DNA of 64,000 nt from Macrostomum lignano (lineage: Eukaryota). The notes beneath the pieces are model-generated. The model worked only from the letters and a program-made list of their open reading frames with translations. It had not been told where the DNA came from and searched no databases. The stretch lies in assembly GCA_002269645.1 (NCBI GenBank), contig NIVC01001946.1, positions 1 through 64,000 of the forward strand, written 5' to 3'. Below are positions 2-25,319 of this stretch, piece after piece; position 1 is the stretch's first letter; every line of letters starts with the position of its first letter. Both the position numbers and the translations under genes were made by a program.

Positions 2-211
2 CTGCTCCGCGTCAGTACTGCAACGTCGCCACGGGTCGGCCAGAAACCGTTGGAGGGTTTCGGCATAGCCGATAGAAGTGCCTTGGAGGTTGCCGGAGAA
101 GCCAGGGAATTCGATTCAGACTGGGTGGTAGCGGCACGCGCAATCGAAAGGCTCATCTTGCTGTTCGGAGTGGTTGCTACTGCTGCCATTATCGGCTTGT
201 TTTTACTATAG
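2..211 (+). CDS. 3' end (M3-M4 loop and M4) of a Cys-loop ligand-gated ion channel subunit; gene starts upstream of the window (copy A)
   Basis: The frame from nt 2 reads LLRVSTATSPRVGQKPLEGFGIADRSALEVAGEAREFDSDWVVAARAIERLILLFGVVATAAIIGLFLL* (TAG 209-211). SDWVVAARAIERL..GVVATAAIIG matches the C-termini of the paralogs ending at 4369, 6793 and 21474. Confidence 0.88.
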   Translation: MLRVSTATSPRVGQKPLEGFGIADRSALEVAGEAREFDSDWVVAARAIERLILLFGVVATAAIIGLFLL

Positions 212-2142
212 AATAATGGACATAAAATGAAGCATTCGATCAAGGAACTGCCGTACGGTAAAAAGGTACAAAATCTTTTCACAATTCGTGCTATCGCAAT
301 TTCGTCTCCTTTCGTGGTATCGCGAACGAGCTTTAAAAGCTCTTCCTTATTAAGTCAAAGTTTGAAGGGATTAGACTGGAAAGTGCCGCAAATTAGGCAG
401 CCAGCGATCGAGGAGGCAAAGCAGTCATATGCCTATTCCACTGACCCATCTGCACTGACACTAATGAAAACGTACGCAGGCACACTCTCGCACATTGTGT
501 AAAATGGCCTCTGGCTTTGTCACCGTGAGACACACTCGCTGAAGCACACTTCGATTACACACTCTGTGCCCTCATGTACTTTGAGTAAAAAGTCTCGTAA
601 AATAGAAATGTTATTTTATAGTTTATAGTTTGGGACAACTATAAAACGTCTTAAAGACTAGTTGAGCACTGTCCTTTCTATAATCTATTATTTAAATGCA
701 CTAAAATATATGTTGTTCTTGTCCTGAATAAAAAATTTAATACTCAGCTGATTGAAGCGTATAAGATACGCCCAGACCAGTAGAAAATATTTCTATTGAA
801 TTAAAGGTTCCCCTCAATCATGATATTCTTTTGGCCCTGCACATGTATTGGGACCAGTCGGTATTTACATACCGTCTATCTAAAAAGTGCTGAAAAGATT
901 TACGATATATTTGAAGCGATTAATTCTTTTCACAATTCAAGTTTTCATTGCAAATATAGCATTGAGCCTATCTACACAGTGGCAGCATCCTCTAGGTTAT
1001 AAATGCTGTATATATCGATTGCATATTGGTACATGTAAATATGCTTTAGACAAACAATGGAGACTGCTTTCGATAGAGTGTTGGATCCCTATAATCGATT
1101 CAATGGCTCCGGCTGCAATCGATTTGTTTGTTAAAGCTCAGTTGCGTAGCGGTTGAAGTGCTCTCGCTTCTGGACTCTCCAGCTCGGTAGGCAATTAGCT
1201 AGCTCAACAGAGTCGATATCTGGAATTTATGGACGGTATTACAAACCCTCAGTTGACAAAGGCAGCTGCACTCGTTACAGAAGAAAGAAGTCCACTACAG
1301 CCGTAAGAGCTTAAACTATGTAGACTGTGTAGGACTTTTCAGTGAGGTGCTTACAAATCCCTTGAGACAGCAAAGCATTTCTGTACTCTTGTGAAAACTC
1401 TGCACTAGCTCTCATATTCGCATACAGATATAGTCCTAAATATTTCAAGTTATGTATTAATTTAAAAAAGTATAAACCGCAGAATTTTTTACTTGCTATA
1501 ATTATTTTAAATGAAGTTTCCTATCGTTATTTCTATTTAGTAAGTCACAAGGTTGGCAAAGTTAATTTTGGTAGAACTTTCAGAGTGGTCGGTTCGTAAA
1601 TTTAACGGTGGATTTTATGAATGAAAGGCTGGGCCAAAATATTCAAAGGAAGTTGGTCATTCCTTGCGCCAAACGCGTCTTGCACGTTATTCACAATCTA
1701 CGGATAAGATGGATCAGCATCGCTGTCACAACGGAACTCGATTTTGGACACACCCTAATTGTCTGCGAGAAGTAGAGCAAAGCATATGGTCTGTGACGTC
1801 GGATGTTTCAATGGAGTCAGTGTATGGAATGCTGTACATCTTGCGTTGTCTGTGTCTTTGAGAGATCAGTAGGCAACATAAAAACTATGCTAAAACACTA
1901 TAGGACCTGCTGCACGCAGCCTTAAGGATCTGCGATATGCGAGTTATCAACGCGGCCTTCTATTGCAGCTCCGGCCTGGTTCTTCAAAGCGACTTGTTGC
2001 GTCTGTTGCAACTGCAGCTGGCAGGCAAATTCACACTCCCCGAGTTGTGTAGCTTGGAGTAGTTGGAGAGAACATGCGGTGAGTGGGTGCAGCATTTGCA
2101 GCGGGATGACCCACAGGGATGGAACCCTTTGGGAAGCAGACC

Positions 2143-2149
2143 CAGAGAG

Positions 2150-2183
<34 letters not shown>

Positions 2184-2320
2184 AGAGAGAGATCATTGCG
2201 ATTTGTTTAAAATGAAAATTCTCGCCAACTAGCTTATTCGATTAAGGTAGTCGGAATTTGTTTATCACATAATTTTATACTCGCAAAGAATACACAGAGA
2301 GAGAGAGAGAGACAGAGATC
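2143..2320. repeat. (GA)n microsatellites followed by a duplicated ~30-bp flank
   Basis: GA tracts at ~2153-2192 and ~2296-2312, each followed by gatcatt(g/a)cgatt(t/c)gtttaaaat. Confidence 0.75.
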
Positions 2321-3089
2321 ATTACGATTCGTTTAAAATTGAACTTCTTGTTAATTTCGTCGAAATGGTTGTCGCCGAGATGGTCTGTTGCCAAATTGGA
2401 CTGTTACTCGGGCGAGGACAGACGCGAACTCGGCGCTCTGTAGACTGCCTGCTGGCCGACACCCGCGCCGCAGATTTAGCTTTGAGGCACGGCCTGCGTG
2501 CCGGGCTGCTCTTGATTTATAAGACCCAACGGACAGGTTAGTTTGATTTTGTCACCTGCTGTATAGACTAAAATTCAACTTCAAAACGACATGGCTTTGA
2601 AAGGGAGCGAAGAATGCTTGTAGGATTTATCCAATTTATTAATTAAACAGATAGTAGCTATACACATAATATTCACGTAAATTTCATTAGCATCCTTTTG
2701 CAACATGCTAGCATACATGGAATACATATCCGAGAATGCTATATAAAGGTGCGCCGCGCGTATCCGTGCTAAAGATAGTTCGCTACTGCAGACCGCACCC
2801 AGACCAGAAAATGCAGCGATGAAAAGTTTCTATGCAAATAACGACGTCAAACGAGGTCAGGGATCTGCTAATTGGAATATCAGACCAATATAAGCAGCTA
2901 ACTTTACGATATTTGATCTATTGAATTACCTAAATGAAATTCAAATAAGAATCAATCTAGAATTTACACTAGCACGCCAGGGTGATGAGTTGCGAGATCT
3001 CTGGTGCTGTATATATATGGCTGCAGTGGAAAACCGAGCAACTTACAATTAACCGATCAATTCAAAGCAAAGCCCTGTCTCGTGGCAAA

Positions 3090-4369
3090 ATGCTCGCTAG
3101 AACAGCGATCCTTTTATGTCTTCTAATAGCTGTTACGCCAACGACTGTCGACTTTGACGCCAAGCTGCTAAAATATCTAAAAAACAATACCGATCACAAT
3201 CCGTTGCATTTTCCACGAATCGACAAAACCAAGATGTTGAACATATCGCTGAACTTCTTGCTGAGCCACATTGTCTCCGTGGACACAGCTAAGCAAAGCA
3301 TGAAGGTGTCAGCATACGTTGAAGCCAGTTGGGAGGAAGAGCGACTCGTGTGGAACCCAGAAGACTTCGGCAATACCGTGTACACCCGATGGGAAGCTGA
3401 ACAGATTTGGCACCCGATCATCATAGTCTACAATGGCAACGGCAATGATCAGACATTGGTGCCGAAGGTGTTTGTTGGATTAAAGTCGAAAACTCCCAAT
3501 TTGTCTGAGGTGATAGCCACTTGGCGACGTGAGTTCGATTTTTTTTGCGCGTACAACATGGCCGAGTTTCCATTTGATCGACACACTTGCGAAATAAAAT
3601 TATTCGCCACTGACGCATACTATCAAAACTTGACGCATCCAGCGGTTCCGCGTATCAAGTACAAGCTTCTAGGCATTTACCAGCATAGTAAAGAATGGAA
3701 TCTCGAAACTGCTACAGTCAGCATATTGACCCAAACATATGACATTTATGAAGAAATGGAATCCACTCTTAAACTACCCATTTACAGAGTCGTATTAAAA
3801 ATTAAAAGGATATCAACCTATTATGTAATTAACATTATAATTCCTCTGTTGCTGCTCGCCCTGCTCCAAGTGCTGGTGTACTTTGTGCCCCTGGAGTCCG
3901 GTGAGAAGCTGGGATTCGGCATCACAATCATGCTCAGCTACACTGTGTTCTTGCTGCTTCTGGACGGAATCCTGCCGAAGTCGCACAAGATGCCGCCATC
4001 GCCCTGTTCATCACGGCCGCCATGGTGCTGTCTACCGTGTCGCTGCTGCTGACCTCGCTGACCATGCTGTTCCACTTCAGGCCGGAGGGCAGCCGCATGC
4101 CGGAATGCGCTCGGACGGTCTTTGTTCGATACCTGGGCCGCCTGCTCTGCGTCAGCGGCGCCACTAGGGCATCACAGAAGACCAATCAAATTGCTGTCGA
4201 AGGCTATACAGAGAACGAAAATGCCCGGAGGCCAAGTGAAAAAGAAGCGTCAGAATCGGACTGGGAAGTAGCAGGTCGAGCAATCGAGAGGCTCATGTCG
4301 CTAATGGGCGTTGTTGCTACCGCCGCTATTATTGGGGCATTCCTGCTGAGGCCACTGTTAATTAACTAA
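3090..4369 (+). CDS. Intronless Cys-loop (nAChR/5-HT3-like, non-alpha) cation channel subunit, copy B, with a 1-nt frameshift at ~3995 (pseudogene or assembly error)
   Basis: Signal peptide MLARTAILLCLLIAVTPT; Cys-loop CAYNMAEFPFDRHTC (C-x13-C); M1-M2 ESGEKLGFGITIMLSYTVFLLLLD. ORF 2982-4052 continues in ORF 4022-4369. Against the paralogs, CCG GCC ATC has lost one G (ccg-cc-atc, 3993-4000). Confidence 0.88.
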
Positions 4370-4626
4370 CTAAACAACACAATGCTGTTAACAACTGTGA
4401 GAACTAATTTTATGGTTGTTTTTATTAGTGTTGCAAAATTATTAACTGGTTTTGCAACTCATCTTGATATTCTTGCTTTAAAATTGTCATGACATACATA
4501 AATTATTAATGTTGATTTTATTAACGGTACTTACCCGCACGGAATCGAACCCGGGACTCAGGACAAGACTCAGATGCGTTGCTGGCTGCAGGAACCGCTA
4601 CTAAAAAGAAATAATTTTTCCGGCTT

Positions 4627-5133
4627 GGGCGCTGTCAACTAAAATAATTATTTATTTATGGCGTCCTTTATGCTTATTATAGGACGGAATACACACACGC
4701 TGCTATCTGCTTACGTATAATATACTCAATATATTATCTACGCCACTAATATGAAGTAGTAGTTTATCTATTTTTTGTACATTTTGATGTTGGAAAATGT
4801 TGGAAGATGTTGGTCTTTTTACATACCCGTTGGAATTCCCGTTAAAAGGTTGAGAGTATATTTTCGATTTCGCATCTGCATTGTAAAGCGAAATATTCTA
4901 ATAAAAGGGATACCAACTAAACGCTCTGGAATGGAGGCCGAAGTGAGGCTCCGGATAAAATATATACATAGACGGACAAGTCGGAGATATTCTCTAAGAG
5001 AGTTCCAGAAACGAACTTGCATTGATAGGATTTTTCGTTATTTATTTCAGCCAGTCGGTTTGTCAGTTTTTTTAGAAATCTAATTCGAGCTTACTTACTT
5101 CTATATACTTACAGTGCTTAAGTTGACAGCCCC
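4627..5133. mobile_element. Possible MITE (imperfect ~16-bp terminal inverted repeats)
   Basis: gggcgctgtcaactaa (4627-4642) versus ttaagttgacagcccc (5118-5133; reverse complement ggggctgtcaacttaa). AT-rich non-coding interior. No clean TSD. Confidence 0.3.
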
Positions 5134-5345
5134 TTTCAAACATTTTGAAGAGTTTCTCTTTACTACTACCATGCAGTAGTTGATAATGTATATTTTACCA
5201 GCTTTCTCGTTTACTAACACACGGAGGATTCGTGCGCTCAGGGGGTAAGGGATATTTAGTCAAACACGGAAGCAACGTCACCAGTTATATTGCACACAAG
5301 AGTACCTCCACAAATGAAATTAATTCAATTACAGCAGTTCCACTC

Positions 5346-5359
5346 GTTGCCATGGCGAT
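5346..5359. promoter_or_regulatory. RFX X-box-like motif ~160 bp upstream of copy C ATG
   Basis: GTTGCCATGGCGAT: perfect left half-site and AT spacer, imperfect right half. Positionally conserved with 20001-20014. Confidence 0.5.
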
Positions 5360-5504
5360 TGATTCAGCACTGGTAGACCAGACGCGTTATTGACTAAACA
5401 GCTATCCTATAGGATCTTTTCTTCAACTCTGCTTTCTATGATGATATAGAGTAGAAAGCAGTAACCAACATTTGCCTCTTACACCGTATCGACACATCGA
5501 CACA

Positions 5505-6793
5505 ATGTCCGTACGCGAAATTCTACTAGTCGCCACAGCGATTTTAGCTGCCACTTGTGGCGGCTCAGCTCAAGATAGAGATCTGCAACACGAGCTGCTG
5601 CAGTACTTGAAGAACAATATCACCAACTATAGTCCGCTGCTGCGACCCACAATTAACGCCTACAAGCCTACTTACATCACTATGGACACATCATTGACCC
5701 AGCTGGTATCAGTAGACAGTGCCAAGCAAAGCGTCAAGATTGGGGCTTTCGTAATGGCCGGCTGGACGAGGAGCGTCTGGTCTGGGATCCGGCCAAGTTT
5801 GGGAACCTAACCGTGATTAACTGGGACAATTCGAATGTCTGGTTTCCTGTCATCCTCATCTATAATGGCATCGGAGACAACCAGATGCTCACTCCGCAGA
5901 TGCCAGTGTATCTAAGGTCGATCCAGTCCAACCTTACCAGAGTCATCGCGGGATGGCGTCGAGAGTTCGAATTCTCGTGTGAGTTCGACGTGAGCAAATT
6001 CCCCATAGACAAGCACGTCTGCGAGCTCGAGTTCTTCTTCAACGACCAGGGCCATGACAACCAAATGCTGATTCCTGTCAAGAACAATTTGACGCCATTC
6101 CAAATAGACGGACTTTATCGGATGAACAGCGAATGGAAGTTGGTGAATGCGTCGACGTCGTCCGAACGGAAGCCGTACAAACTCGTTCAAGGTGCACCGG
6201 ATGTGCTTCTACCAACTTATGTGATCCGTCTGGAGATCGAGAGAGTCTCCGCCTACTACTTTATGAACATCATCACACCACTGCTACTGCTGACTTTGCT
6301 ACAAGTGCTGGTATACTTTGTGCCCCTGGAGTCTGGCGAGAAGCTAGGATTCGGCATCACAATCATGCTCAGCTACACTGTGTTCCTTCTTCTGCTGGAC
6401 AGCATCGTGCCCAAGTCGCAGACAACACCAGCGATCGCTTCGTTCATCACGGCCGCTATGACCTTGTCGACGATATCTCTGCTACTAACGTCGCTAATTA
6501 TGCGTCTGCACTTCGCTCCGGAGGGCAATCGGATGTCGGCCTGCATGCGTGCCGTTTTGATTGGCTTCTTGGCTCGAGTGTTCTGCGTTGGCGGTGCTGC
6601 CAAAATCAACAAGGTCGAGATCAAGAATGGGACTAGCATCGAAAAAAAGAACAGTACTGATGAAGAGGACACTCCAGTTGTTCGATCCGATTGGGTGGTT
6701 GCTACGCACGCTGTCGAACGACTCATGGTTGCTATGGGAGTGGCCGCCACTGCAGCTCTTATTGGAGTTTTCGTCATCCAACCGTACACCTAA
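5505..6793 (+). CDS. Intronless Cys-loop cation channel subunit, copy C, with a 1-nt frameshift at ~5767 (pseudogene or assembly error)
   Basis: ATG 5505 (MSVREILLVATAILAATCGGSAQD signal peptide). ORFs 5472-5810 and 5813-6793 join if tgg ac- gag (5763-5770) is restored to tgg acc gag as in copy D. Cys-loop CEFDVSKFPIDKHVC, four TM helices. Confidence 0.9.
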
Positions 6794-7187
6794 AGACCGC
6801 AAGAGATTATACTGAGTCGGCTTATGAAACTTTCTGAAAAAAGATTCTTTAATAATAATAAATTCTCTATGCTTCTATCTTCTAATTAAATGAATTAATT
6901 CACATCAAAAGTGCATGGGTGCTTCTAGTCTTCTCATTTAATCGAGCGACTTTCAGCAGTGTTCTGTTCTACGAGCTATGCTAATTGTATGCCACTCTGT
7001 GCCACTAGAGACAACTAGAATCAGATTATGCAAACATATAAAAAACAGCTTTGGTTCTCTACTCACAGCAATTGCTGCCGCAGTAGGCTTGCACCCCAAT
7101 CCTTCATAAAACGATAGGTTCATCAAGAGGATAGCTACTCAATCATGCAGTAAACTAAGAGGCACTTTTCATGATTGCAAATGGTGA

Positions 7188-7201
7188 GTTGTTATGGTAA
7201 C
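7188..7201. promoter_or_regulatory. RFX X-box motif ~400 bp downstream of copy C stop
   Basis: GTTGTTATGGTAAC fits GTHNYY-AT-RRNAAC. Homologous position to 21839-21852. Confidence 0.5.
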
Positions 7202-7529
7202 AGTTAATGAATTCTTAGCAAAGGCTTGGTAAGCACTCGATAAAACTAACTGTGGACAGAGCCTTCAGCGAACAGGCAGGACTATTGTTAATTTAACGAA
7301 ATCACAAGCTTTTTGGGCAGAAAGTTTTAGAGAGCGTGTGTTTACTGCCACCAGAAAAAGTTATTTGCAAAGACGATTTTTTTCAACAGGTGGAATAAAG
7401 GCCCGTTTGAGCTACTGAAACTTGAAAGCGGAACCGGGCATTTTTATTCAGCTCGAGAGGGAGAATCCAAACACGAATGGAATAAAATATGACGGAAACA
7501 ACTACAAGTATGTGCATATGGCATATTTC

Positions 7530-8470
7530 TATATATCTCTCCTCCCCTCCCCTGCCCTAATACTAAAACTGACGCGATGTTTGTCTGTCTGTCTGTCTGT
7601 CTTGTCTGTCTGTATGTTGTAAGTGAACTCCTACAATTCTGGCAAGTCAGCGTCGAAACTTATATGGGAAAACTGCAAATTTTCCGGAGCAGGCTTTAGG
7701 CTATTTTAATTTTCACATTTTAACATCCCTAAAAAAGCAGAAAACTGCTTTTTCAGCCACCAATAACCTTCTTTGGCCACTCTGACTGGGGCTGCAGCCA
7801 GTTTGTAAAAAAAGCCACCCCAACCTCCGCCCGCGGGTCGCTGTGTATTGAGGGGTGGTGGGTGCGCGTGTTCTGCGTGCGTTCAATGCAAATAAAACCC
7901 CCCGCATGTTGGGGGGTTGAGGTCAAGTTAATGCTTCCCCCAGAACGGGGGTTGGGCTTGGGTTGAGTGTACATAGCAGTTGTACAGTGTAAACAGATAG
8001 ACTGTGTCGAGATTCATTTGGTTTTATTGTTGGCGCCTTTTTTCCATAGGCAGCCCTGTGTATTAGTTTGGCAGTGAAATTCAATGAATAAACTTGCGAG
8101 CTTCTCTATCTCTAGCAAGCAGTCGGGAAATCGGTAAATTTCAAACGCTAACTGTTCCTCGAGTTTTAAACTTTGAGAGGAGACACTTATATTGCTGGAA
8201 AGATCTTGCAACGCTGAGTTCGGGGATAAAAGTTGTTTGCTTTATATATGAAAAGAAAAAGCACCGCATTTAAAAAACTATTTCCATACTTTTTTAACTT
8301 TCTGCAAAAAATTGTACTCAGTTTTGCGAGACGTAATAGATAAAGTTGGGGGAGGGTTCAACTTCTCACTGCTGCTGTGTATTGGAGGGTTGGTTTAGAT
8401 TGCGCAATTGCGCAATGTTTTTGTTAACTTTAACTGAGACTGATACTGACTGACTGTGAAATCGGTTGCG
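7530..8470 (+). mobile_element. Putative non-autonomous Helitron/HINE-like repeat (family member 1)
   Basis: tactaaaac followed by a (TGTC)n microsatellite near the 5' end. Shares agccaccccaacctccgcccgc and tgtacatagc..tgtacagtgt with 10346-11130, and actgatactgactgactg with ~59185-59203. Boundaries approximate. Confidence 0.35.
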
Positions 8471-8537
8471 CAATGAATTGATTCAATTATTTCAATATTT
8501 TTATCAGTTGTCTTTTAACACGAAGCTGTGCGTAGTT

Positions 8538-8573
8538 CTAACCCTAACCCTAACCCTAACCCTAACCCTAACC
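8538..8573. repeat. Interstitial telomere-type repeat (CTAACC)6 = (TTAGGG)n on the minus strand
   Basis: ctaaccctaaccctaaccctaaccctaaccctaacc read directly. Confidence 0.9.
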
Positions 8574-8619
8574 AATGAATCCGGAGAGTTGAGTTGTTTG
8601 ACGGAAAAAATTCGATTGA

Positions 8620-9130
8620 GTCCAGTTTAGCGGAGACGATTTCAATGTTTAAAATTTGACGAAGAGGATTTCTGTTTCGTGGAGAGGATTTCGATGGTGT
8701 TCAGTTTCACGGAGAGGATTTCGATGATGTTCAGCTTCACGGAGAGGATTTCGATGATGTTCAGCTTCACGGAGAGGATTTCTGTTTCGTGGAGAGGATT
8801 TCGATGGTGTTCAGTTTCGTGGAAAGGATTTCGATGATGTTCAGTTTCACGGAGAGGATTTCGATGATGTTCAGCTTCACGGAGAGGATTTCTGTTTCGT
8901 GGAGAGGATTTCGATGGTGTTCAGTTTCGTGGAAAGGATTTCGATGATGTTCAGTTTCACGGAGAGGATTTCGATGATGTTCAGCTTCACGGAGAGGATT
9001 TCTGTTTCGCGGAGATAATTTATGATTGATTTCTGCTTTATGGAGACGATTTTGATGAATTTAAGTTTCACGGAGAGGATTTCGAAGGAGTCCAGTTTCA
9101 CGGAGAGGATTTCTGCTTCGCGGAGAGGAT
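8620..9130. repeat. Minisatellite with 30-bp and 20-bp units organised as a 110-bp higher-order repeat
   Basis: Core ggagaggattt. The short unit marker tctgtttcg recurs at 8671, 8781, 8891 and 9001 (period 110 = 20+30+30+30). Confidence 0.9.
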
Positions 9131-9154
9131 CTTGATGGATTTGGCATCTTCAAT

Positions 9155-10220
9155 CAGTCAGAGAAGAGAGTAAAGAGAAGAATGAAAAGAGAAGAGAGAT
9201 GAGATGATAGAAAACAGAGTAGAAATGAGTGGAGAGATTAGACATGACAGATGGGAGAGAAGAGGGGAGTAAGGCGGGAACGAAGGAGAGAGAAGAGAAG
9301 AGGAGAGAGGAGATGAAGGGAGAGGATATGAGAGAGGAGATATGAGATAGCAGAGAGGAGACAGGAGAGAGAAGAAAAGAGGGATAAGAGCGTACAGAGG
9401 CAATAGAAGAGAGGAAAGAGAGGAGAGAGGTGAGAGGAGAGAGATGAAAGATCAGAGATCAGAGATTTAAGAGAAGAAAGTAGTGAGGAGAAAGAAGAGG
9501 GTAAAGATGAGAGTGCAGAGAGGAGAGAAACAAGAGGAGACAGGTGGTAGAAAGGAGTGTAAAAAACAGGAGATAAGAAAGGAGAGGGTGAGAGTGAGAG
9601 CATATAGGAAAGTGTAAAAGGGGAGCAGAGGAGAGAGAATAGATAAGTGAGTAGAGAAGAGATATGAGGGAGGAGAGATTCGAGATTAGAGAAGAGATGA
9701 GGGGAGATGAGAGGAGAGAAGAGAGAATGGAGAGGAGAGAAAAGAGAGGAGAGGAGACAGGTGATGCAGTAGAAAGGAGGGAAGAAAGATGGTAGATAAG
9801 AAAGGAGAGGGTGAGAGCGTATAAGAGATACGAGAAATGAGAGCAGAGAGAAGAGAGAAAAGGGAAGAGAGAAAGTAGAGCGGAGACGATAGATAAGTGA
9901 GTAGAGATGAGATATGAGAGAGGAGAGAAAAGGGGAGAGATAAGAGAGAAGATAGGAGAGTAGACAGGAGAGGGTACAGACGAAAGACGAGGGAGAAGAG
10001 ATAAATAAGGGAGTAGAGATGAGAAAAGAGACAGAAGAGATAAGCGAGAATAGTAGGAATAGAGGAGAGAGAGAAGCGAGAGAAGGGAGAGAGTAGGGAG
10101 AAGAGAGATGAAAGATCAGAGATGAGAGAGATGAAAGTGTAGAGAGGAGTAATTAGTGAGGAGAAAGAAGAGAGTAAAAATAAAAATCAGAGCGCAGGGC
10201 GCAAGAGATGAGAGATGGGA
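9155..10220. repeat. Polypurine (A/G-rich) low-complexity tract 1
   Basis: The + strand is overwhelmingly A/G for ~1 kb. An internal diverged duplication is visible (~9530-9700 versus ~9765-9930). Confidence 0.9.
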
Positions 10221-10345
10221 GTTGATAGATTGTAGAGGATTTGGAAGATGGGATTCAATTCATGGAATTTCAGCTGATAGGAGTTCTTCCCCTTCAGAAT
10301 TCCGGTGATGGGAGTTCTTCCCCTTTCTTCTCCAGAGGAGGAGTT

Positions 10346-11130: not shown

Positions 11131-11559
11131 GCGAGAGATTCAAACCAGTGTCCTCTGTATAGACAAGTCTGCAGCAGTTTAACAGTGGATGGCAAATCAA
11201 GGCGATGTGGGATGGTTTGTAAAAATAGCGAAAAATTAATAACTGATTAGTAGTGATTACAATGCAATCCTACTAAATTAGTTACACCATGAAAATTTTA
11301 ACATTAAGATTCGCATAAGGTACTTTAAAATTTAAATGGCTCCTAAGAAATACGTATTTCCTTGGTTGCTAGACTGCTGCAGACTGTGGTGGTGGAGCTG
11401 GGCTGGAGGGAGATACACAAATTCCTCTCAGGGCTGCTAATTGGCCAGAAATATGATGTGATTAAAGCATAACAACCATGAGAGTACTACGCCCCACAAA
11501 CGCTTTCGAAGCGGGGATTGGCAGACTTTAACCTCAAATGCCAGATAAAGAACCAAGCT

Positions 11560-13262
11560 CATGGCTGATGAGATAAGAGTGAAAAGGAGAAGGAATAGAC
11601 TATAAGAAGAGAGGAGAAGCGAGAGGAGGATAAGAGAAAAGATAGAAGACAAGAAGAGAGACGATGGGGTAAGGATAAGGAGTGAGCAGATAATATTGGA
11701 GTAAGAAGCGAGAGGAGGGGAGAGAGAAGGGAGAGGAAAGAGTAGAAGTGAGAAGAGGGAGAGAGAAGATGGGAGAGATGAGACAGGATCGATGACAGAG
11801 GAGAGCAGAGAAGAGTGAGAAGAGAGTAGAGATGAGAGATGAAGGAGGAGAGAGCAGAGTGCAGAAAGGCGAGAGAAGAGAATAGAGGGGAGAGAGTATA
11901 GAAGAGAGAAGAGAAGAGGAGTAAGGAAAGAGAGGAATCAGAAGAGGGTAAAGAGAAGAGTACACTGAAGATTGGAGAGTACAGATGACAGAAAAGAGAG
12001 GGGATGAAAGTGAACACGATATCTGAGAGGAGAGAGGAGAGCGGAGATAGGAGTCAGATGAGGGGAAAGAGAAGAGTACAGAGGAGAGAGGTGAGAACAT
12101 ACGAGTATACGAGAGTAAGGATGACAGATGAGAGAGGGAAGATGAGACTGAGAGAGCAAAGACGAGAGTGAACACACGAGAGATGGTAGAGTAGAGAGAA
12201 AAGAGGATAGATAAGAAATAAGAGATGAGAGATGAAAGGTGAGACAAAGGGAGAGAGAGAAGTGAGTGAGGAGAGAGGAGGGGAAGGGAGAGAATCGAGA
12301 GGACAGGGGAAAGAGGGGAAAGGATGAGAGAGAGATGAGAGAGGGGAGAGGAGAGAGGGAGAGATAGAGGTAGAGAGCATGCAGAGAGAAATGAGAAGAG
12401 AGAAGAGAGAAAAGATAAAAGAAGAGAAAGGAGAGATAGATAAGAGAGCAAAGACGAGAGAGGAGAGGTGGGGAAGAGACGATAGAAGAGAGGAGAGGAG
12501 AAAGACGAGAGAGTACAGAGTACAGAGGAGGGAGGAGAGGAGAAAGGAGAGAGAAGTGTTCGGAGAGGGTAGAGTAAGGAGTGAGAAGAGGGAGAGGGAG
12601 GAGAGGAGAGGAGAGAGGAGAGTAGAGAGCAGAGGGAAGATAGAGTAGAGAGCAGAGAGAAGATGGAGTAGAGAGCAGAGGGAAGATAGAGTAGAGAGCA
12701 GAGAGAAGATAGAGTGGAGAGCAGAGGGAAGATAGAGTAGAGAGCAGAGAGAAGATAGAATAGAGAGCAGAGGGAAGATAGAGTAGAGAGCAGAGGGAAG
12801 ATAGAGTAGAGAGCAGAGAGAAGATGGAGTAGAGAGCAGAGGGAAGATAGAGTAGAGAGCAGAGAGAAGATAGAGTGGAGAGCAGAGGGAAGATAGAGTA
12901 GAGAGCAGAGAGAAGATAGTAGAGAGCAGAGAGAAGATAGAGTAGAGAGCAGAGAGAAGATAGTAGAGAGCAGAGAGAAGATAGAGTAGAGAGCAGAGAG
13001 AAGATAGAGTAGAGAGCAGAGAGAAGATAGAGTAGAGAGCAGAGAGAAGATAGTAGAGAGCAGAGAGAAGATAGAGTAGAGAGCAGAGAGAAGATAGAGT
13101 AGAGAGCAGAGAGAAGATAGAGTAGAGAGCAGAGACAAGAGAGGAGAGGAGAGGAGAGAAAAGAATAAGAGGGAATAGACGCGAGAAGAGGGGATAGAGG
13201 AGAGAGAGAAGAGACCACAGACCAGAGAGAAGAAAGAAAACAGAAGAGAAGGTAGAGATAGA
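11560..13262. repeat. Polypurine tract 2, including a ~27-bp tandem array (agagcagagagaagatagagtag-type) at ~12620-13135
   Basis: Near-pure A/G + strand. It explains the spurious Leu/Ser-rich minus-strand ORFs. Confidence 0.92.
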
Positions 13263-16200
13263 AGTTTCTAAGGATCCAACTTCCAAGGGACACAAGGAGA
13301 GGCAGAGGCCATGAGTTTGCCTGACATTCTGCGCAGCACCCTAACCAAAAATATTAATGTTTGCTTCAAATACTAATTTTACATGAATGTACTCTATTTT
13401 ATGTTTAACTCTATCCTAAATTCCTAACTATTAAAAATTTTTTGTTTAAGTATGACTTCAGATTTTAGAATACTTTCAAAAATAGTTCTAGGGATTGGAG
13501 TTCCCCGGGTTCAAAATCCGCGGGTTTCAACAGCTTGTCGATATATAATAGACACAACCACAGATCCTAAATCTTAGTCAATTAATCAGGCTTCGCAAAA
13601 GAACATAACTAAACACAGGATTGCTTTGGTTTAAATTTTTACATGTAAAAACTATCAATTGATGCGACTATTTATAATATCTTACGAAAACCAACGCAAG
13701 TGTCAATGACCTTTCATTTTGCAATACTTGGAGGGATGGACACTTAAACAGGCTCGTCAAGTTAAAAGATGACTATTTGGACTGCTCTGAAACAAATAAA
13801 TAGGACCAGAATATTTTTATTTTGGCAGAAAATTAAAGCTGTTTTCCGGGTAAGCAATTCTCTAAAAAGGTTTCGAGAAACAAGGCATCTAGGCCTTATC
13901 TATTCTTTTTCACGATCCCTGGTTTGGTTCCTGTTAGGAGACGTGGGAAAGCCGGAAGGGCCTCCTTGCGAGTTGTGCGGGTGGTGCTGCACTCAGAGGT
14001 CTTGTGAGATGGCGCCAGGTTGCAGCTCTCCAGCCGGTTGTGGAGACCGCCTTGCTGTAATTGTACTGAGCTATTATTGTCACTTTTGGATGCACTCTGT
14101 CAAAATGGATGCACATATGCAAGTTTTGTTCAAAAGACAGCGAGACAAAGGCACTGTCTTGTAACCCAGTGTCAAAACTGAATGCACACTGTCAAATGTA
14201 CTAGCAAATTGTGAATAAAGGTTGTAGTTTGTCTTTTTCGGTTGAAAATCGGCATTATTTTGCATTTGAGTTTGTCAAAATAGATTGAAAATTTCAACAA
14301 GCGATACAACAGACTGTCAAAATTGAATGCAAAGATGTCAATATTGAGTGCAGATTTTCCAAAAATCCAAAATCCAAAAAAGAAAGTAAAAAGGTGTAGC
14401 TAAAACTCGGTCTTGTTGTTTCTGTGAAACACTCTATTCGTGAGCTACTTCCTAAGTTGAATCTTAGGTTCAAATTTTGCTGTGTGAAGCGCCCCCAGCT
14501 GGGAGTTGGAAGTCTTTCCCTACTGGGAGAAAATATTAAGCGGCAAATCACATGACTATAGGTGTTGTGGCTCTGGCTTGTGACCCTCAGATAAAAATCC
14601 GGCTTATGCCACTGACATCTGGCTGCTGTGGGCTAGACCAAGGTAGCTAATATGCAAATTTTTGTAAGAATAATAAAAAAATTTCTACCTTCCGTCTATA
14701 TCTATATGAAACATTCTGTTGGGGCGCTAAGTTGACAATATTTACTCATCTCATGCGCAACATGCCAATTGAAAATAGAGCTAGTATTTGTTTGGTCTGA
14801 AGTTAAATTATTTGGTTGGATTATTGCCGACTAGACCTAGTTAATTGACTTTTTTCTTCTTCAGAAGTGCTCCTCGGAGGGTAAGAAAACAGATTGAGGC
14901 CTCTAAAAAGTTGAGATGTTTGACGCGACGCAGGTGTTAGGGTTTCAAATCTCTGGCCTCTTACGATCTCCGGTGCCTTACGTTCTCCTGTAGGCATAAT
15001 TAAAAGTCAAGGGATTTTTTATAAAGGGATTAAAGTTGATAAGAAATTGGTAGCCTTTGAGATCGTCACACGTGTGCTATGTACGCAGTGCTTACTTGTC
15101 AAATGAGTATACGCATAATAATACTAATAGCTCAGCACTATACAGTTCACCACATGCCTTGGCTGCTTCATTATGGCCAGTATTTTATACCTGTTCACTG
15201 TTCAGCATGATCTTCCGTCCAAAGAAAATGACAAATTGAAGCGTTGAATTAGAGAAAAAGGCACGAGTTTTGCTCTTCACAATGTAGCGGAATGTACCAG
15301 CTATAGTTAAAAATATTGCAAGCAGCAAGAGACGGTGATCAAAAGAGTTGAAAAAAGTTGTTTGCATCGAGGATAAGGCCAAGAAGCTTGTCGAAAGGGT
15401 TCACATGGAGTCCTGTCAATTCGGTCTAAAAGCCTCGTCAAAATCAGATGTTACAGTAATGTAGCCGTCACTCCGATTGCCAGGCATAGGCATGTACGCA
15501 GAACTTACATATTGTTGGGTTGCTGTTCAATTCCCAGTGCATACTTGCGGCTGTGCACACCGGATGTACACTGCAGGTGACAGACTATCGATCTTAATCG
15601 TACCTGAAAGTCATGTAGCTCGTATGTACATCTACATATACGTAGATGTACATACATGACAATTCCTTTCTATCCAGGTGCAAAGAAACGGCCAAAATCA
15701 ACGGCTTAACCAAAATTGCCTGAGTTTGCTGCTCAAAGTTTGTGATTCATATAGTCGTGACTGCATGGGATTTAAAGCGAAATGCCATCTAACTCGTCTA
15801 CGACACTCCACCACAGGCACTTCACCCTTTCTGTATGCCGTATCTCTCTGTCTTCTCTAGCGCCTTGTTTGAATTTCAGGCATTAATGCCGACAGAATTT
15901 GTATATTTGCATATAAGAAGCGCCCTACTTCATCAATTTTAGGGCGGCCTTTGGATTCAATCAATTGGGAGATGAGGCTGCCAATTTCTTAACTCGCCCG
16001 ACTGCCGTGCGAACTACTACGAACAGACGCCAGTTGGCTGAAAAAGCAACGCATCGAGCAGAGACAAAAAAGCTGATCGCCCAGAATATTTGGACTTCGC
16101 AAGAGAAGGAAACCGAGTCAGACTTAAAAAGTCTCAACGCGATGACCGACCGCAAAGACGGAAAATTCCAAATGGCTTGGAATGCGCGCAGATAAAAAAT

Positions 16201-16797
16201 GTAACACGAGCGTAAAAGATGTTTCAGTCTGAATGTACTAGCTGACTGCTCTTAAAGGGTGCGTCAATGGACAGCAATCGAAACGCTGCTTCAACTTTGT
16301 TAGCCGAAGTGGACCGATTAATTACCAATGTTTGATCTTAGTATAAACTATCTGTTTTACTAAGTAACGAATAGATATTTGTCAGCAAGTGAGGCGGTTT
16401 CAGTAACTATTCCATTTTCTTTAGATGAGTAAAATGTACACTACTTTTTCTAATATAGTGGTCTGATTGAGTGAACAGCCTTGGAACTATTGTGAAAGAG
16501 AAATAATTTTGATGCCTGCACTTTCGGTCTTTAAAGGACATGTGATCACAGCGGGACCGCAGACAAGAAGCCGGAAATCCTAAAGCAAACCTTTTGTGAG
16601 GTTGCGTTTGATTTGTGCAGTTGGGGTGGTGGCTGCTCTCTTATTACTTGCATCTCGCTTTACTCTGTGCATGCCGCCACCCCAGTTGGGTGACTCATTT
16701 TATAACCCTTCTATCGCTGACTATATAATCGCTCCCCATTTATTGTGCATGTCAAATATACTTCGTGATTTTGACTCTAATTTCTCGGCTCTTACAT

Positions 16798-16808
16798 TGG
16801 TGGCAGCG
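16798..16808 (+). other. Primer-binding site of the Gypsy element (tRNA-Leu-type)
   Basis: TGGTGGCAGCG, 1 nt after the ..TTACA LTR end, is complementary to a tRNA 3' end ..CGCUGCCA-CCA as in eukaryotic tRNA-Leu(AAG/UAG). Confidence 0.7.
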
Positions 16809-18493
16809 AGAACCCAGTGCAAGTGCACTTATGGCCCAGAACACCCTGCTACCGCCAAAGTTCAGTGGAACAGACGGCTCTGACGTGAGAAAATGCCTAC
16901 GCATCTTCGAGGAGTTTGCCAACGATGCGAAATGGGACGATGAGACCTCAGCATCGAAAGTGAAACTGCTGCTTACGGGAGAAGCCCAACTGGTCGTCTG
17001 GGACCTCGCCGAGACGAGGCAGAAGAGCTTCAAGAGCATCAAAGAGGACCTCACAAAGTTTTACGGAGGTGAATCCGACAGCTTTAAGGCTATGAGTGAC
17101 TTCTACTCGAGGAAGCGTGGAGACACCGAGACGCTCCGTGAGCTCTGCTTCAACCTGAAGCTGCTGTACCAGAAGGCCAGGCCGAGTGACTCAGTTGCTC
17201 AGTGGGACCGAGATGTGCGTTTCAAACTTCTGCAGCTGCTCAAGGCCGACATTCGCGACAACCTGCTCAAGACAGAGGACGCAGAGAGCTGCTGCCTGGA
17301 GACTGCTGCGGCGGGCGGCTCGGCTGGAGAAGCTGGCTTGGCGACAGGACCGCCTGGACCGACTGGAGAAACGCATGAATGAGCTCATCGCGAGGGTCAG
17401 CGTGCAGTCCGGTATCGAAACTCGGCGTCGCCGTCAGCAGCGAGGAGGCGGCTGCTTCAACTGCGGCCAGCTCGGACACCGTGCTGCGCAATGTCAGCAG
17501 CGTCAGAAACAGCCGGACCAGATCATCTGCCACAAGTGTCTCAAGCAGTTCCGCATGTACCTGAGCAACAGCCGCAAGATCCAAGTGTTCACCGACCACA
17601 AGCCAATCACCGGGCTGCTCAACGCGAAGGAGCCAATCGGTCGGCTCGCACGTTGGCTGCAACTCATTCAGGAGTTCCTCCTGGAGATCCTGTACCGGCA
17701 AGGCAAGGAGAATATCGTGCCAGACGCCCTCAGCCGAGCACGCGGTTCTACACGCGGTTCAGCACGCGATGCTCCAGCCCGACTTTCAAGTTCCGGCGGC
17801 GGCGAGTGAGTCGGTCCAAAAGCTCACCGGACGGCGCACTGCTCCGCAACGGGCTGCCAGTGATCCCACAGCACATGCGAGCGGAGCTGCTGCAACAGGC
17901 GCACGACCGGCCGAGCGCGGGTTACCTCAAACAGCGGCGGCTGCTGCGAGCCTTGCGCGAGCGTTCCTCGTGGCCGGACATGCGCGAGGACGTGCAGGAC
18001 TGGGTGCGGAGCTGCCTGGTCTGCCAACGCCGCAAAGGAGCGCCAAAGCGAGCGCGCGCTGAGCTGGTGTGGCAACCGCTACCGGCCAAGCCACGGGGTG
18101 TCATGCAGCTCGACATCAAAGGCCCGCTGCCAGCCACCGATTCAGGCAAGCGCTACATCCTCTGCTTTGTTGACACATTTTTAAAGTGGGTGGAGGCTGC
18201 CGCCCTCAGCCAGATCGACGCCAAGACGGTAGCCGAGGCTCTGGTGACCTGCGTGGTGCTGCGGCACGGAGTTCTGGAGGTCGTGCACTCGGACTCGGAT
18301 CGAGGCCGAAGTTTTCAAGCAGACCTGCGCGCTGCTCGGAGCAGAAAAATCGAGGACCTCACCGTATCACCCCAGCGGCAACGGGAACGTCGAGAGGTTC
18401 AATAGAGGTCCAGCAAATTTCGTAGGACGCTGGGCAACATGCTCTCGGCATTCTGCTCGGATAACCAAGCCGGCTGGGATGCCCTGCTGCCCT

Positions 18494-18856
18494 TTTTTTA
18501 TTAGAGGCAGGGGGGTTGTGTGCACCCTGGCGCACTTTAAGCGACATAGGCACACAACCGGCGAGAGGCATTACTGCCCATTCCGCCGATTCCCCTGAGC
18601 AGGCATACAAGCGTGCGGATACGTACGCAGGCACACACTCACACAGGAGTGTACAGCGGCCCTAACTTTATTTTATCGTTAGGCATGTACACTTCACTGT
18701 GCCTTGGGGGGTTGGCTCTCAAGGCCGTTAATTGCACGAGCAGAGCCAAGCCGAGATTCCAATTCAGCCCCAAATTAATGTGACTGCACTTGGAATCGAG
18801 CCTGGGTCGCTGGCACACCAGAGCAGCTGCGCTACCGCTGGGCTACGGCCCCCCTA
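18494..18856 (-). mobile_element. tRNA-derived SINE (~363 bp) inserted in the Gypsy integrase
   Basis: 13-bp TSD gccctgctgccct at 18481-18493 and 18857-18869. On the minus strand: A box TAGCCCAGCGG (18835-18845), B box GGCTCGATTCC (18792-18802) and an A-rich tail at ~18494-18501. The integrase frame DALLP/YVVWAYN resumes across the insertion. Confidence 0.88.
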
Positions 18857-20000
18857 GCCCTGCTGCCCTACGTCGTGTGGGCCTACAACAGCTCTGAGCA
18901 TAGCTCCACGGGCAAGTCGCCGTTCAAAGTTCTACGCGGCATGGAGCCCAGACTGCCAGTCGACTTGGCGCCCGGTGGGCAGCGCGACCAGCCGCAGGAC
19001 TGCGCGGACCTGCAGGCGAGAATCAGGCGCAGCTTCCAGGTGGTGCGAGCGCACCTGCACACGGCCCAGAGATCGCAGCACGAGTTCTACAATCTAGCGG
19101 CAGAGACTACCGACTTCAAGACTGGTGACCGAGTGATGCTGACGCACCATGCGATGAAGCGCGGCCAGTGCAAGACGCTGTCGAACCGGTGGTCCGTCCC
19201 GTTCATCGTCCTTAAGAAGGTTCAGTGAACTACCGGCTGCGGGCTGTGAACGGCAGGCGCCGGTTGCTGGTCCACCACGACCGCTTGAAGCACTTTATCG
19301 ACCGACCGAATCTGAGCGACAGGCCGCCAGCCAAGCTGGCCACCGAGGACGACTGTCCGAGCGCTCCGCGGGCCAGCTTGTCGGCCCGGACGCCTGGGAG
19401 CAGCTGCGTGACCCGAATGCGGCTGAACCCGGCAACGCGCTACGTCGGTCGGGCAGTCAGCGACGGCGGCCGGATTTTTACACGGCGACCAGTTGACGAG
19501 CTTTCTGTCTGCTACTTGATTGGGACTTTTTCGTGTTGCATGAACCTTTTTTGTTGTTTTACTTTTGTTTTATTCCGTTTCTTATCAAGCTCGCAGATCC
19601 TAAGCTGATTTGCGATCCCCTGGTCGAATGATGGCTGCCTCGCAACTCCGAGGTAGACTAATCAGAGAGTTCCCCGGAAACTGCGAAGCAGCCACCGTTC
19701 ACCGAACCGGAGATTGCAAAGAACTTGTAGTCCCCAGAAGAAACCCCTAAGGCCAGCCAGGAGACCGTACAGTCACTTTACATCATCTTGACGAGTTACA
19801 AATTCTTACTAACAGTAGTTAGATAGATCATGCGTGTTTTACAAGCTTTATTTTACAAGTATTTTATTAACGCGAGGACTAGTGCACCCCGGGGGGAATG
19901 GTATAGTTAGCCAAACACGGAAGCAATATTGGCATTTGTGACGAGCTTATACTTCCTAACTTCCACAAACGAGATTCATCCAATTACAGCAGTTCCACTC

Positions 20001-20014
20001 GTTGCCATAGCGAC
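20001..20014. promoter_or_regulatory. RFX X-box motif ~165 bp upstream of copy D ATG
   Basis: GTTGCCATAGCGAC (GTTGCC-AT-AGCGAC), one mismatch from the strict palindromic consensus. Confidence 0.55.
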
Positions 20015-20166
20015 GGCTTCAACAATGGTAGGTGAGACGCATTACTGTTTAACAGCTATGCTTATGGTGCTTTGCTTCAGCTCTGCTTTCTATTTAATTC
20101 TGCCGTAAAGTAGAAAGCCATAACTAACACAGTAACCAAAATTTGCTTCTTACACATATCGACACA

Positions 20167-21474
20167 ATGTCCGTACGCGGAATTCTACTAGCTGCCACTG
20201 CAATCTTAGTTGCAACTTGTGGCGGCTCAGCTCAAGATAGAGATCTGCAACACGAGCTGCTGCAGTACTTGAAGAACAATATCACCAACTATAGTCCGCT
20301 GCTGCGACCAACAATTAACGCCTACAAGCCTACGTACATCACTATGGATACATCCTTGACACAGCTGGTATCGGTAGACAGTGCCAAGCAAAGCGTCAAG
20401 ATTGGCGCCGTTTTAATGGCCGGCTGGACCGAGGAGCGTCTGGTCTGGGATCCGGCCAAGTTTGGGAACCTAACCGTGATTAACTGGGACAATTCGAATG
20501 TCTGGTTTCCTGTCATCCTCATTTATAATGGCATCGGAGACAACCAGATGCTCACTCCGCAGATGCCAGTGTATTTAATGTCGATCCGACCCAACCTCAC
20601 CAAAGTCGTCGCCGGGTGGCGTCGAGAGTTCGAATTCTCGTGTGAGTTCGACGTGAGCAAATTCCCCATAGACAAGCACGTCTGCGAGCTCGAGTTCTTC
20701 TTTAGCGACCAGGGCCATAACAACCAGATGCTGATTCCTTTCAAGAACAATATGAAGCCATTCCAAATAGACGGACTTTATCGAACTAACAGCGAATGGA
20801 AGTTGTTGAATGCGTCGACGTCGTCCGAACGGAAGCCGTACAAACTCGTTCAAGGTGCACCGGATGTGCTTCTACCAACTTATGTGATCCGTCTGGAGAT
20901 CGAGAGAGTCTCCGCCTACTACTTTATGAACATCATCACACCACTGCTACTGCTGACTCTGCTACAAGTGCTGGTATACTTTGTGCCCCTGGAGTCTGGC
21001 GAGAAACTAGGATTCGGCATCACAATCATGCTCAGCTACACTGTGTTCCTTCTTCTGCTGGACAGCATCGTGCCCAAGTCGCAGACAACACCAGCGATCG
21101 CTTCGTTCATCACGGCCGCTATGACCTTGTCGACGATATCTCTGCTACTAACGTCGCTAATTATGCGTCTGCACTTCGCTCCGGAGGGCAATCGGATGTC
21201 GGCCTGCATGCGTGCCGTTCTGATTGGCTTCTTGGCTCGAGTGTTCTGCGTTGGCGGCGCTGCCAAAATCCATAAGGTCGACGGAGCAGAGGACGTCGAG
21301 ATCAAGAATGAGACTAGCATCGACAAAAAGAATGCTACTGACGAAGAGGACACTCCGGTTGTTCGATCCGATTGGGTGGTTGCTGCGCACGCTGTCGAAC
21401 GACTCATGGTTGCTATGGGAGTGGCCGCGACCGCTGCTATTATTGGAGTTTTCGTTATCCAACCGTACACTTAA
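20167..21474 (+). CDS. Intact intronless Cys-loop (nAChR/5-HT3-like, non-alpha) cation channel subunit, copy D, 435 aa
   Basis: ATG 20167; signal peptide; WFPVILIYN (loop A region); Cys-loop CEFDVSKFPIDKHVC; no vicinal CC in loop C; M2 GEKLGFGITIMLSYTVFLLLL; short M3-M4 loop; M4 DWVVAAHAVERLMVAMG. Confidence 0.95.
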   Translation: MSVRGILLAATAILVATCGGSAQDRDLQHELLQYLKNNITNYSPLLRPTINAYKPTYITMDTSLTQLVSVDSAKQSVKIGAVLMAGWTEERLVWDPAKFGNLTVINWDNSNVWFPVILIYNGIGDNQMLTPQMPVYLMSIRPNLTKVVAGWRREFEFSCEFDVSKFPIDKHVCELEFFFSDQGHNNQMLIPFKNNMKPFQIDGLYRTNSEWKLLNASTSSERKPYKLVQGAPDVLLPTYVIRLEIERVSAYYFMNIITPLLLLTLLQVLVYFVPLESGEKLGFGITIMLSYTVFLLLLDSIVPKSQTTPAIASFITAAMTLSTISLLLTSLIMRLHFAPEGNRMSACMRAVLIGFLARVFCVGGAAKIHKVDGAEDVEIKNETSIDKKNATDEEDTPVVRSDWVVAAHAVERLMVAMGVAATAAIIGVFVIQPYT

Positions 21475-21838
21475 TGACAGCTCGAGATTAGCCTGATGGG
21501 GCTTATGAAACTTACTGAAAATTGATTCCTAAATATTTATCAACCCTCTATTATTTTCTCTTCTAACTACGAGCTAAATCCGATAAAGTGTTTTGCATCA
21601 AAAAGTGCACGGGTGCCTCTAGTTGTCTCTAGTGGCAATTACGAGCTTAGAACAAGAACAATGCGAAATGTCGGCTAAACTAATTATCAAGCTGAATAAG
21701 TGTGAGCATCTATAAAGAATGGCTCTTGCTTTCTTGTTGCACTGCCAATTCCCAACGAAATGAGTTTCAGAGGAAATGACCGGATTCGTCCCTCAATCAT
21801 TCAATCAACTAAGCTTCAGTTTGCACCATTGCAAATGA

Positions 21839-21852
21839 GTTGCCATGGTAAC
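21839..21852. promoter_or_regulatory. Consensus RFX X-box ~365 bp downstream of copy D stop
   Basis: GTTGCCATGGTAAC, a full consensus match. Confidence 0.6.

Positions 21853-25288: not shown

Positions 25289-25319
<31 letters not shown>

Follow-up and report, generated by a model that had tools for sequence, protein, structure and literature searches.

A Macrostomum tandem array of intronless, probably non-cholinergic nicotinic-like subunit genes

The first third of a 64,000-nucleotide stretch of DNA from the flatworm Macrostomum lignano (contig NIVC01001946.1, positions 1 to 64,000 of the forward strand; "the window" denotes this whole stretch) carries four related genes of the Cys-loop receptor superfamily, here called copies A to D, which resemble subunits of the nicotinic acetylcholine receptors (nAChRs). 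The question raised by this locus is what such a row of genes encodes: receptors for acetylcholine, receptors for some other ligand, as proposed in an earlier note made from the letters of this DNA, or the remains of genes no longer in use. The reading that we favour, with a probability of roughly 70%, is that of a small, Macrostomum-restricted birth-and-death array of orphan, probably non-cholinergic, predicted cation-channel subunits. The array grows and decays via DNA-level tandem duplication, and copies B and C carry fresh single-base frameshifts.

Four copies on one strand, one of them intact

The open reading frames (ORFs) of the six frames and a tblastn search of copy D against the whole window reveal exactly four coding regions of this kind, each on the + strand, with stop codons at 209-211 (A), 4367-4369 (B), 6791-6793 (C) and 21472-21474 (D). 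The four same-strand paralogs ending at 211, 4369, 6793 and 21474 described previously are thus borne out; in the remaining 42 kb of the window the same tblastn search found no fifth copy. Copy A (2-211) is cut by the window start and consists of the final 69 codons of a gene, covering the end of the cytoplasmic loop and M4; its frame-2 translation is free of stops and matches copy D over 53-208 with 44% identity, while it is too short to yield a Pfam match, and none was obtained. Copy B (3090-4369) and copy C (5505-6793) are full-length but frameshifted paralogs, about 47% and 94% identical to D at the protein level, respectively, and copy D (20167-21474) is an intact gene of 435 aa. In B, C and D the Pfam domain Neur_chan_LBD is followed by Neur_chan_memb; the best E values, 2.6e-28 and 6.3e-20, are those of D, where both exceed the gathering scores, and the ligand-binding domain of B is matched with E = 7.7e-28. 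These three copies are single-exon genes: each aligns with D from end to end as one uninterrupted DNA block, and therefore no introns are present, as had been claimed.

The three complete copies had been taken for open genes; only D is one, and both frameshifts had evidently been read through. In copy B, one nucleotide is missing between 3995 and 3996, in the M2-M3 loop, where the junction reads ATG CCG CC ATC instead of the ATG CCG GCC ATC (M-P-A-I) of its relatives, a G having been lost; the ORF as written stops at 4052, and the tblastn match to D falls into two frames (3081-3986 and 3995-4354). In copy C, the lesion lies between 5767 and 5768, at codon 88 (GGAC[C]GAGG, with loss of a C); in the DNA alignment copy C reads GGA-CGAGG where D has GGACCGAGG, and its match to D is split over frames 3 and 2. 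Copy C has, in addition, an in-frame deletion of 18 nucleotides near 6613, in the cytoplasmic loop. After restoration of the single bases, no further stop codon is found in B or C. A tiny intron as the source of the frame changes was ruled out, the breaks being single missing bases within conserved codons.

The two single-base lesions are probably real. The competing explanation is that they are errors of assembly or sequencing, in which case all three complete copies would be intact genes; it agrees with there being just one lesion per copy and no other stop after correction, with the low ratio of nonsynonymous to synonymous substitution (dN/dS) of 0.2 between C and D, and with the fact that both lesions are losses of one base from 2-nt homopolymers (GG to G, CC to C). 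No frame break occurs in D (1.3 kb) or in the four exons that encode the C-terminal half of cullin-5 nearby (about 1.2 kb), so that the assembly is not riddled with indels; the 18-nt deletion of copy C likewise speaks against error, and pseudogenes and relics are to be expected in arrays of this type, since copy c4 of the M. lignano array described below is one and others have been reported (PMC6896357). Error is accordingly a possibility that we entertain only tentatively.

In copy D, a hydrophobic N-terminal leader is followed by an extracellular domain, by M1-M3, by a loop of 65 residues and by M4. The AlphaFold model of the monomer (mean confidence score, pLDDT, 87.7; alignment of 65 sequences) has the topology of a pentameric ligand-gated ion channel (pLGIC), with the expected strands and the helices M1-M4. 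The M3-M4 linker spans residues 337-401 of the model and contains one short helix, in keeping with the very short loop (about 65 residues) noted before; of the proposed signal peptide, the hydrophobic helix stands (residues 2-18 of the model), its assignment as a signal peptide being a judgement by eye. Among solved structures, the top sequence match of D is the human alpha7 nAChR (E = 1e-40), and the top Foldseek matches are chains of alpha7 and alpha4beta2 (E about 1e-31).

A conserved pore and a lost aromatic cage

The residues discussed in this section were read from an alignment to human alpha7 and from a MAFFT alignment of seven family members with the 115 nearest single-domain relatives. 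The family has two of the features that define the Cys-loop superfamily, namely the ligand-binding and membrane domains and a pair of cysteines 13 residues apart enclosing F/YPxD; in copy D this is C159-x13-C173 with FPID, and neither cysteine varies among the seven members. The Cys-loop with FPxD, the Trp of WxPD, the Arg preceding M1, the SGEK motif and the Leu at 9' are kept throughout the family, and so are the Pro of the M2-M3 loop and the four transmembrane helices. The invariance of SGEK places a Glu at both -1' and -4'; the former is found in 113 of the 115 relatives, no PAR-type anion motif precedes M2, and the signature of the cation-selective branch (nAChR, 5-HT3 and ZAC type) is thus present. 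The outer acidic residue is an Asp at 19', not at 20'. Apart from the Trp of WxPD, these are the elements that a pentameric, cation-selective channel requires. The motif strings quoted earlier were found as given, RKPYKLVQGAPDVLLPTY and CELEFFF in C and D, and GEK and C-x13-C in all copies.

The ligand-binding pocket has fared differently. Trp B (W149 of alpha7) is replaced by S, N, T, I or A in all seven members, while 102 of the 115 relatives have W; the Asp of WxPD has become V, I, L or E (D in 100 relatives) and Trp D has become V, F, Y, L or I (W in 83). The vicinal Cys pair (YxCC), present in 71 of the relatives, is likewise absent from every member, residues of KL or LV type standing in its place, and Tyr C2 is replaced by A, E, S, H or N. 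Tyr A and Tyr C1 are kept, with Phe in one member, and loop C exceeds that of the nearest relatives by 4-5 residues. The losses reported previously (loop-B Trp, WxPD Asp, vicinal cysteines) therefore hold for the whole family, to which those of Trp D and Tyr C2 are to be added, and the residue table supports the combination of a cation-selectivity signature (GEK, -1' Glu) with the absence of a cholinergic aromatic cage: Trp B and Tyr C2 of the principal face, Trp D of the complementary face, the WxPD Asp, by which loop B is positioned, and the Cys-Cys that alpha subunits have at the tip of loop C are all missing, and acetylcholine-binding residues have thus disappeared from both faces. Near relatives that lack the Cys pair (a beta4-like protein of Octopus, an alpha10-like protein of a sea urchin and a Pinctada protein) retain Trp B, Trp D and the Asp, and the family thus goes past an ordinary non-alpha subunit; this condition is uncommon but has parallels, as 12 of the 115 relatives likewise have neither the Cys pair nor Trp B nor Trp D.

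Compared with human alpha7, to which it is about 23-25% identical, the family shares the fold, the domain order, the Cys-loop, GEK, the 9' Leu, Tyr A and Tyr C1; it differs in having replaced W55, D89, W149, C190, C191 and Y195, in a cytoplasmic loop about half as long and in the position of the outer acidic residue (19' against 20'). Two other channel groups were considered and rejected: the "Cys-less" clade of ligand-gated ion channels of schistosomes (PMC9874803), because both cysteines are present, and the anion-selective ACCs of flatworms, because GEK is present.

The same division between pore and pocket is seen in the rates of change. Across six family lineages, which are 49% identical overall, identity amounts to 95% in the M1-M2 linker and M2, 80% in M3 and 75% in M1, against 31% in loop B, 29% in the region of loop F and 21% in loop C. 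In ordinary alpha subunits, loops B and C are among the best-conserved parts. Purifying selection is indicated by the Nei-Gojobori estimates: dN/dS between C and D is 0.20 at a dS of 0.13, and their M1-M3 blocks encode identical amino acids, with a dS of 0.03 as against 0.15 in the extracellular domain; indeed, the two copies differ in M1-M3 (6250-6600 and 20915-21260) at only two synonymous positions in 85 codons, which suggests either a gene-conversion tract or very strong constraint, including constraint on synonymous sites. Between D and the annotated gene of the second M. lignano array (c2, see below), dN/dS is 0.19 overall and 0.07 in M1-M3, and for M1-M3 it ranges from 0.07 to 0.12 across the pairs D-c2, D-c1, D-B and c1-c2.

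Duplication, relatives and neighbourhood

Copies C and D lie in duplicated segments (5126-6935 and 19769-21629, both on the + strand) which self-blastn aligns at 86% identity over 1.88 kb, with a weaker continuation at 7138-7343 against 21792-21995. Their coding DNA is 95.3% identical and their flanks 73-75%, the homology extending about 380 bp upstream and 140-550 bp downstream; as the flanks are shared, the two copies arose by a DNA-level segmental duplication and not by two retropositions. No poly(A) or A-rich tract follows any stop codon of the array, and with homology reaching past the gene (about 380 bp upstream, at least 140 bp downstream) and no retroposition marks found, the copies do not have the properties of processed retrocopies, an origin which had been put forward earlier and which the data do not support. 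Of an ancient retroposition before the array was formed, intronlessness is the sole, indirect hint.

The 13-kb spacer between C and D is filled by satellites, delimited with Tandem Repeats Finder, and by a decayed retroelement. A satellite of 110-bp period (with a 30-bp sub-period) occupies 8659-9138 and a long GA-rich array with periods of 7, 23 and 46 bp occupies 11710-13249; these repeats account for the strong GC/AT skew between 8 and 14 kb and for long spurious ORFs on the - strand rich in Ser and Leu codons. The retroelement (16765-19608, + strand) is of long terminal repeat (LTR) type, with Pfam matches to zf-CCHC, RT_RNaseH, Integrase_H2C2 and rve in several frames, and includes a gag zinc knuckle, the RNase H tail of the reverse transcriptase, the zinc-binding and core domains of the integrase and a C-terminal integrase piece; most of the reverse transcriptase is missing, and the GC content is 53-57% as against about 43% in its surroundings. 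Downstream of copy B, a stretch at about 4525-4570 resembles the reverse complement of a tRNA T-arm or box B (CGGAATCGAACCCGGGAC); ARAGORN calls no tRNA at this place, and the stretch may be a fragment of a tRNA-derived short interspersed element.

The distribution of the family is narrow. When 5.8 billion protein clusters were searched by word index, two relatives only were returned (60% and 46% identity), and an exhaustive phmmer scan of 1.84 billion cluster representatives returned one full-length sequence (P0002, 48%) and two fragments (P0003, 67%; P0011, 41%), all other matches, out of 15 billion proteins, being at most about 36% identical and mostly between 21 and 32%. The close matches are the M. 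lignano proteins PAA92206.1 and A0A1I8GG98, and UniParc accessions lying near to them suggest the same origin for the others; in the public collections, P0001, P0002 and the two fragments are the only sequences that belong to the family, and a profile search with the family added no members. Next in order are short predicted proteins named as alpha10-, alpha7- or beta3-like, mostly of molluscs, with others from a brachiopod, a sea urchin, amphioxus, corals and a hookworm. The view that the genes are lineage-specific is therefore upheld, relatives at 46-60% identity occurring in M. lignano only, and so is the view that no conserved neuronal or muscle subunit stands in 1:1 orthology to them; no 1:1 ortholog was found outside Macrostomum. 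The notion of a large expansion is not borne out: four copies are present in the window, not tens to hundreds. No literature specific to the M. lignano gene identifier or to the pLGICs of Macrostomum was found.

A second array is present on the M. lignano contig NIVC01000059.1, where three intact ORFs and one relic, again intronless and all on one strand, lie in tandem upstream of GIPC1: c1 (7884-9188, an intact ORF of 434 aa), c2 (10001-11305, annotated as BOX15_Mlig033226g1; PAA92206.1 / A0A267H1R5), c3 (12825-14105, an intact ORF of 426 aa) and c4 (16390-16674), a truncated relic comprising M3-M4 only, after which GIPC1 follows. The family is under-annotated in the assembly GCA_002269645.1, in which the single-exon c1 and c3, on either side of the gene for PAA92206.1, are not called as genes. 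The tail of copy A is 83% identical to c4, and this tail, together with about 800 bp of non-coding DNA downstream, matches c4 and its flank at 75-82% (window 2-332 and 958-1519). The GIPC1 exons of the window lie at about 48.4-51 kb (48462-50965, + strand), in blocks 74-81% identical to the GIPC1 of NIVC01000059.1 (20727-21277). On the strength of these two matches, the window is syntenic with NIVC01000059.1, and the array is older than the divergence of the two lineages.

The correspondence between individual copies is less simple. In the window the order is A (c4-like), B (c3-like), C and D (c2-like), and on NIVC01000059.1 it is c1, c2, c3, c4. The synonymous sites of D against c2 and of B against c3 are saturated (proportion of synonymous differences 0.6-0.7), for which reason these two pairs were not accepted as orthologs; most pairs are therefore probably old paralogs in a reshuffled array, and only A and c4 look orthologous. 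That the flank of about 800 bp downstream of A and c4 is conserved although the synonymous sites of other copies are saturated is an observation in its own right, for which a conserved element and a repeat common to both loci are the two explanations. In summary, BOX15_Mlig033226g1 and its neighbours are like the genes of the window in sequence (46-60% identity, M2 identical or nearly so, the same cage residues lost) and in arrangement (single-exon, same-strand, tandem, close to GIPC1), and unlike them in copy order and number, being possibly old paralogs, not orthologs, of D and B.

The remainder of the window agrees with the earlier description of spliced, repeat-filled housekeeping genes beside the array. 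Exons of a class-V aminotransferase (AGXT-like) lie at 23119-25524 on the - strand, an intron repeat of which (24877-25524) reads TDRQ/CLSV in long spurious ORFs; an exon for the C-terminal part of HPF1 (Histone PARylation factor 1; Pfam E = 1e-27) lies at 29462-29926 on the same strand; and cullin-5 occupies 35532-44336, also on the - strand, with exons intact where checked and introns packed with high-copy minisatellites at 35748-36820 (30 bp, 36 copies), 38998-39775 (22 bp, 36 copies), 40396-42869 (21 bp, 119 copies) and 43317-43868 (42 bp, 13 copies). GIPC1 completes the set. Further large tandem arrays are found at 26394-28458, 30800-31556, 32017-32794, 33440-34067, 59441-60143 and 62470-63049, one of the further arrays consisting of 16 copies of a 129-bp unit at 95% identity, and minisatellites make up a striking share of the window. 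At 55063-55512 (+ strand), an ORF carries a 12-letter motif recalling the RNase H of retrotransposons; no Pfam match was obtained there at E <= 0.001.

Competing readings and significance

Three groups of known receptors invite comparison. Intronless nAChR-like genes in same-strand tandem arrays, formed by stepwise lineage-specific duplication and accompanied by degenerate copies, have been described in molluscs, annelids and cnidarians (Jiao et al. 2019; PMC6896357); the Macrostomum array is like them in all these respects and in its lophotrochozoan host, and unlike them in that the flatworms were outside that survey, in that a handful of genes is found here instead of tens to hundreds, and in that no retroposition marks were found. 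The chemotactile receptors of cephalopods, a cephalopod-specific group with 26 members in octopus, have been shown to act in sensation and to be opened by hydrophobic compounds (van Giesen 2020, Allard 2023 and Kang 2023, reviewed in PMC11526382); they share with the present family a descent from nAChRs as cation-channel subunits, the loss of the acetylcholine signature, intronless genes and a diversified binding pocket. Among the Octopus and PDB matches on which the comparison was based, however, no sequence affinity was seen: the best Octopus match of the family is 31% identical and retains the cage, and the chemotactile receptors are not among the top 60 sequence matches or the top 50 fold matches of copy D in the PDB. 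Alpo4 of Alvinella pompejana (PMC10338036) is also an orphan lophotrochozoan nAChR-like subunit without the Cys pair of loop C, phylogenetically isolated and unresponsive to acetylcholine or serotonin, yet it keeps its cage (F103, W159, Y199, Y205, W65), whereas Trp B, Trp D and Tyr C2 are gone from the Macrostomum proteins. The general pattern of intronless tandem genes in lophotrochozoans is thus known already (PMC6896357), as are orphan nAChR-like receptors without the acetylcholine signature (the chemotactile receptors and Alpo4); the present family is, on the sequences compared, a Macrostomum-restricted clade in which the cage has been lost to an unusual extent and the pore is exceptionally invariant.

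The description of the genes as divergent, intronless, tandem nAChR-like subunits is supported, and the favoured reading adds a functional proposal to it. The subunits would assemble into cation-selective homo- or heteromeric pentamers with a common pore, possibly mixing; gating would be by a ligand other than acetylcholine, with no reliance on a cation-pi Trp; and the orthosteric pocket, hence the ligand specificity or the use of the site, would differ between paralogs. Nematodes offer precedents in orphan nAChR-like channels gated by betaine, choline, amines or protons. Several observations weigh against this reading: frameshifts disable two of the three complete copies, and in M. lignano two intact copies lack annotation as genes, which makes an active array less certain; the variability of the binding loops might stem from a site that is no longer in use and under relaxed constraint, and not from diversification of ligands; the retention of Tyr A and Tyr C1 leaves some room for a quaternary-amine ligand; and, dS to M. 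lignano being saturated, the dN/dS ratios that involve it are rough.

It had been suggested that the array encodes ionotropic chemoreceptors; such receptors would be expressed in sensory cells, gated by environmental (possibly hydrophobic) ligands and convergent with the cephalopod receptors. On this view macrostomid flatworms would independently have converted a lineage of nicotinic receptors into chemoreceptors, or into sensors of other non-transmitter signals, with binding loops specific to each paralog on a single invariant cation pore. The traits shared with the latter, namely descent from nAChRs, loss of the acetylcholine cage, intronless genes and a cation pore (PMC11526382, PMC10338036), are what that analogy draws on, and the proposal is mildly favoured by the resemblance to chemoreceptor families in birth and death, in pseudogenes and in fast-evolving binding loops on a fixed pore, to which the longer loop C may be added. 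It nevertheless seems unlikely to us, since only a handful of genes make up the family (four copies here, three and a relic in M. lignano, none more in 5.8 billion clusters), since its nearest Octopus relative among the matches keeps Trp B and Trp D and betrays no special cephalopod affinity, and since orphan channels gated by neurotransmitters, protons or metabolites fit the same sequence features. That the proteins might instead be accessory or structural subunits which bind no ligand and join canonical alpha subunits in acetylcholine-gated heteromers would agree with the absence of the vicinal Cys pair from non-alpha subunits in general, with the extreme conservation of M1-M3 among paralogs, as expected of obligatory co-assembly, and with the survival of Tyr A and Tyr C1; it is made less likely by the absence of Trp D and Trp B, given that ordinary non-alpha or complementary subunits keep these residues and the WxPD Asp (in 102, 83 and 100 of the 115 relatives for Trp B, Trp D and Asp, respectively) while the family lacks them in all seven members, as well as by the want of a 1:1 ortholog outside Macrostomum, and we regard it as improbable.

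A further alternative is that the whole array in the window is a decaying remnant in which D is intact yet unexpressed. Its case is made by the two broken copies, by the spacer of satellites and dead retroelement which now parts D from the other copies, and by the observation that intron-poor nAChR genes of bivalves are often unexpressed (PMC6896357). Copy D, however, is free of lesions, dN/dS stands at 0.2 with not a single amino-acid change between C and D in M1-M3, and M. lignano retains three intact copies with identical M2; an intact D and a signal of selection make a fully dead array unlikely, and to decay as the general explanation we would give but a slim chance. The reading of a small birth-and-death array of probably non-cholinergic cation-channel subunits accordingly remains the one that we prefer.

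As a flatworm instance, the array would carry over to the Platyhelminthes a pattern already known from other lophotrochozoans, that of intronless nAChR-like genes in tandem. It also offers a compact candidate for deorphanisation, with four to five paralogs and an easily cloned intronless gene of 435 aa in a genus for which RNA interference and transgenesis are available; a ligand, if found, would reveal what the nicotinic scaffold binds after the loss of every tryptophan of its cage.

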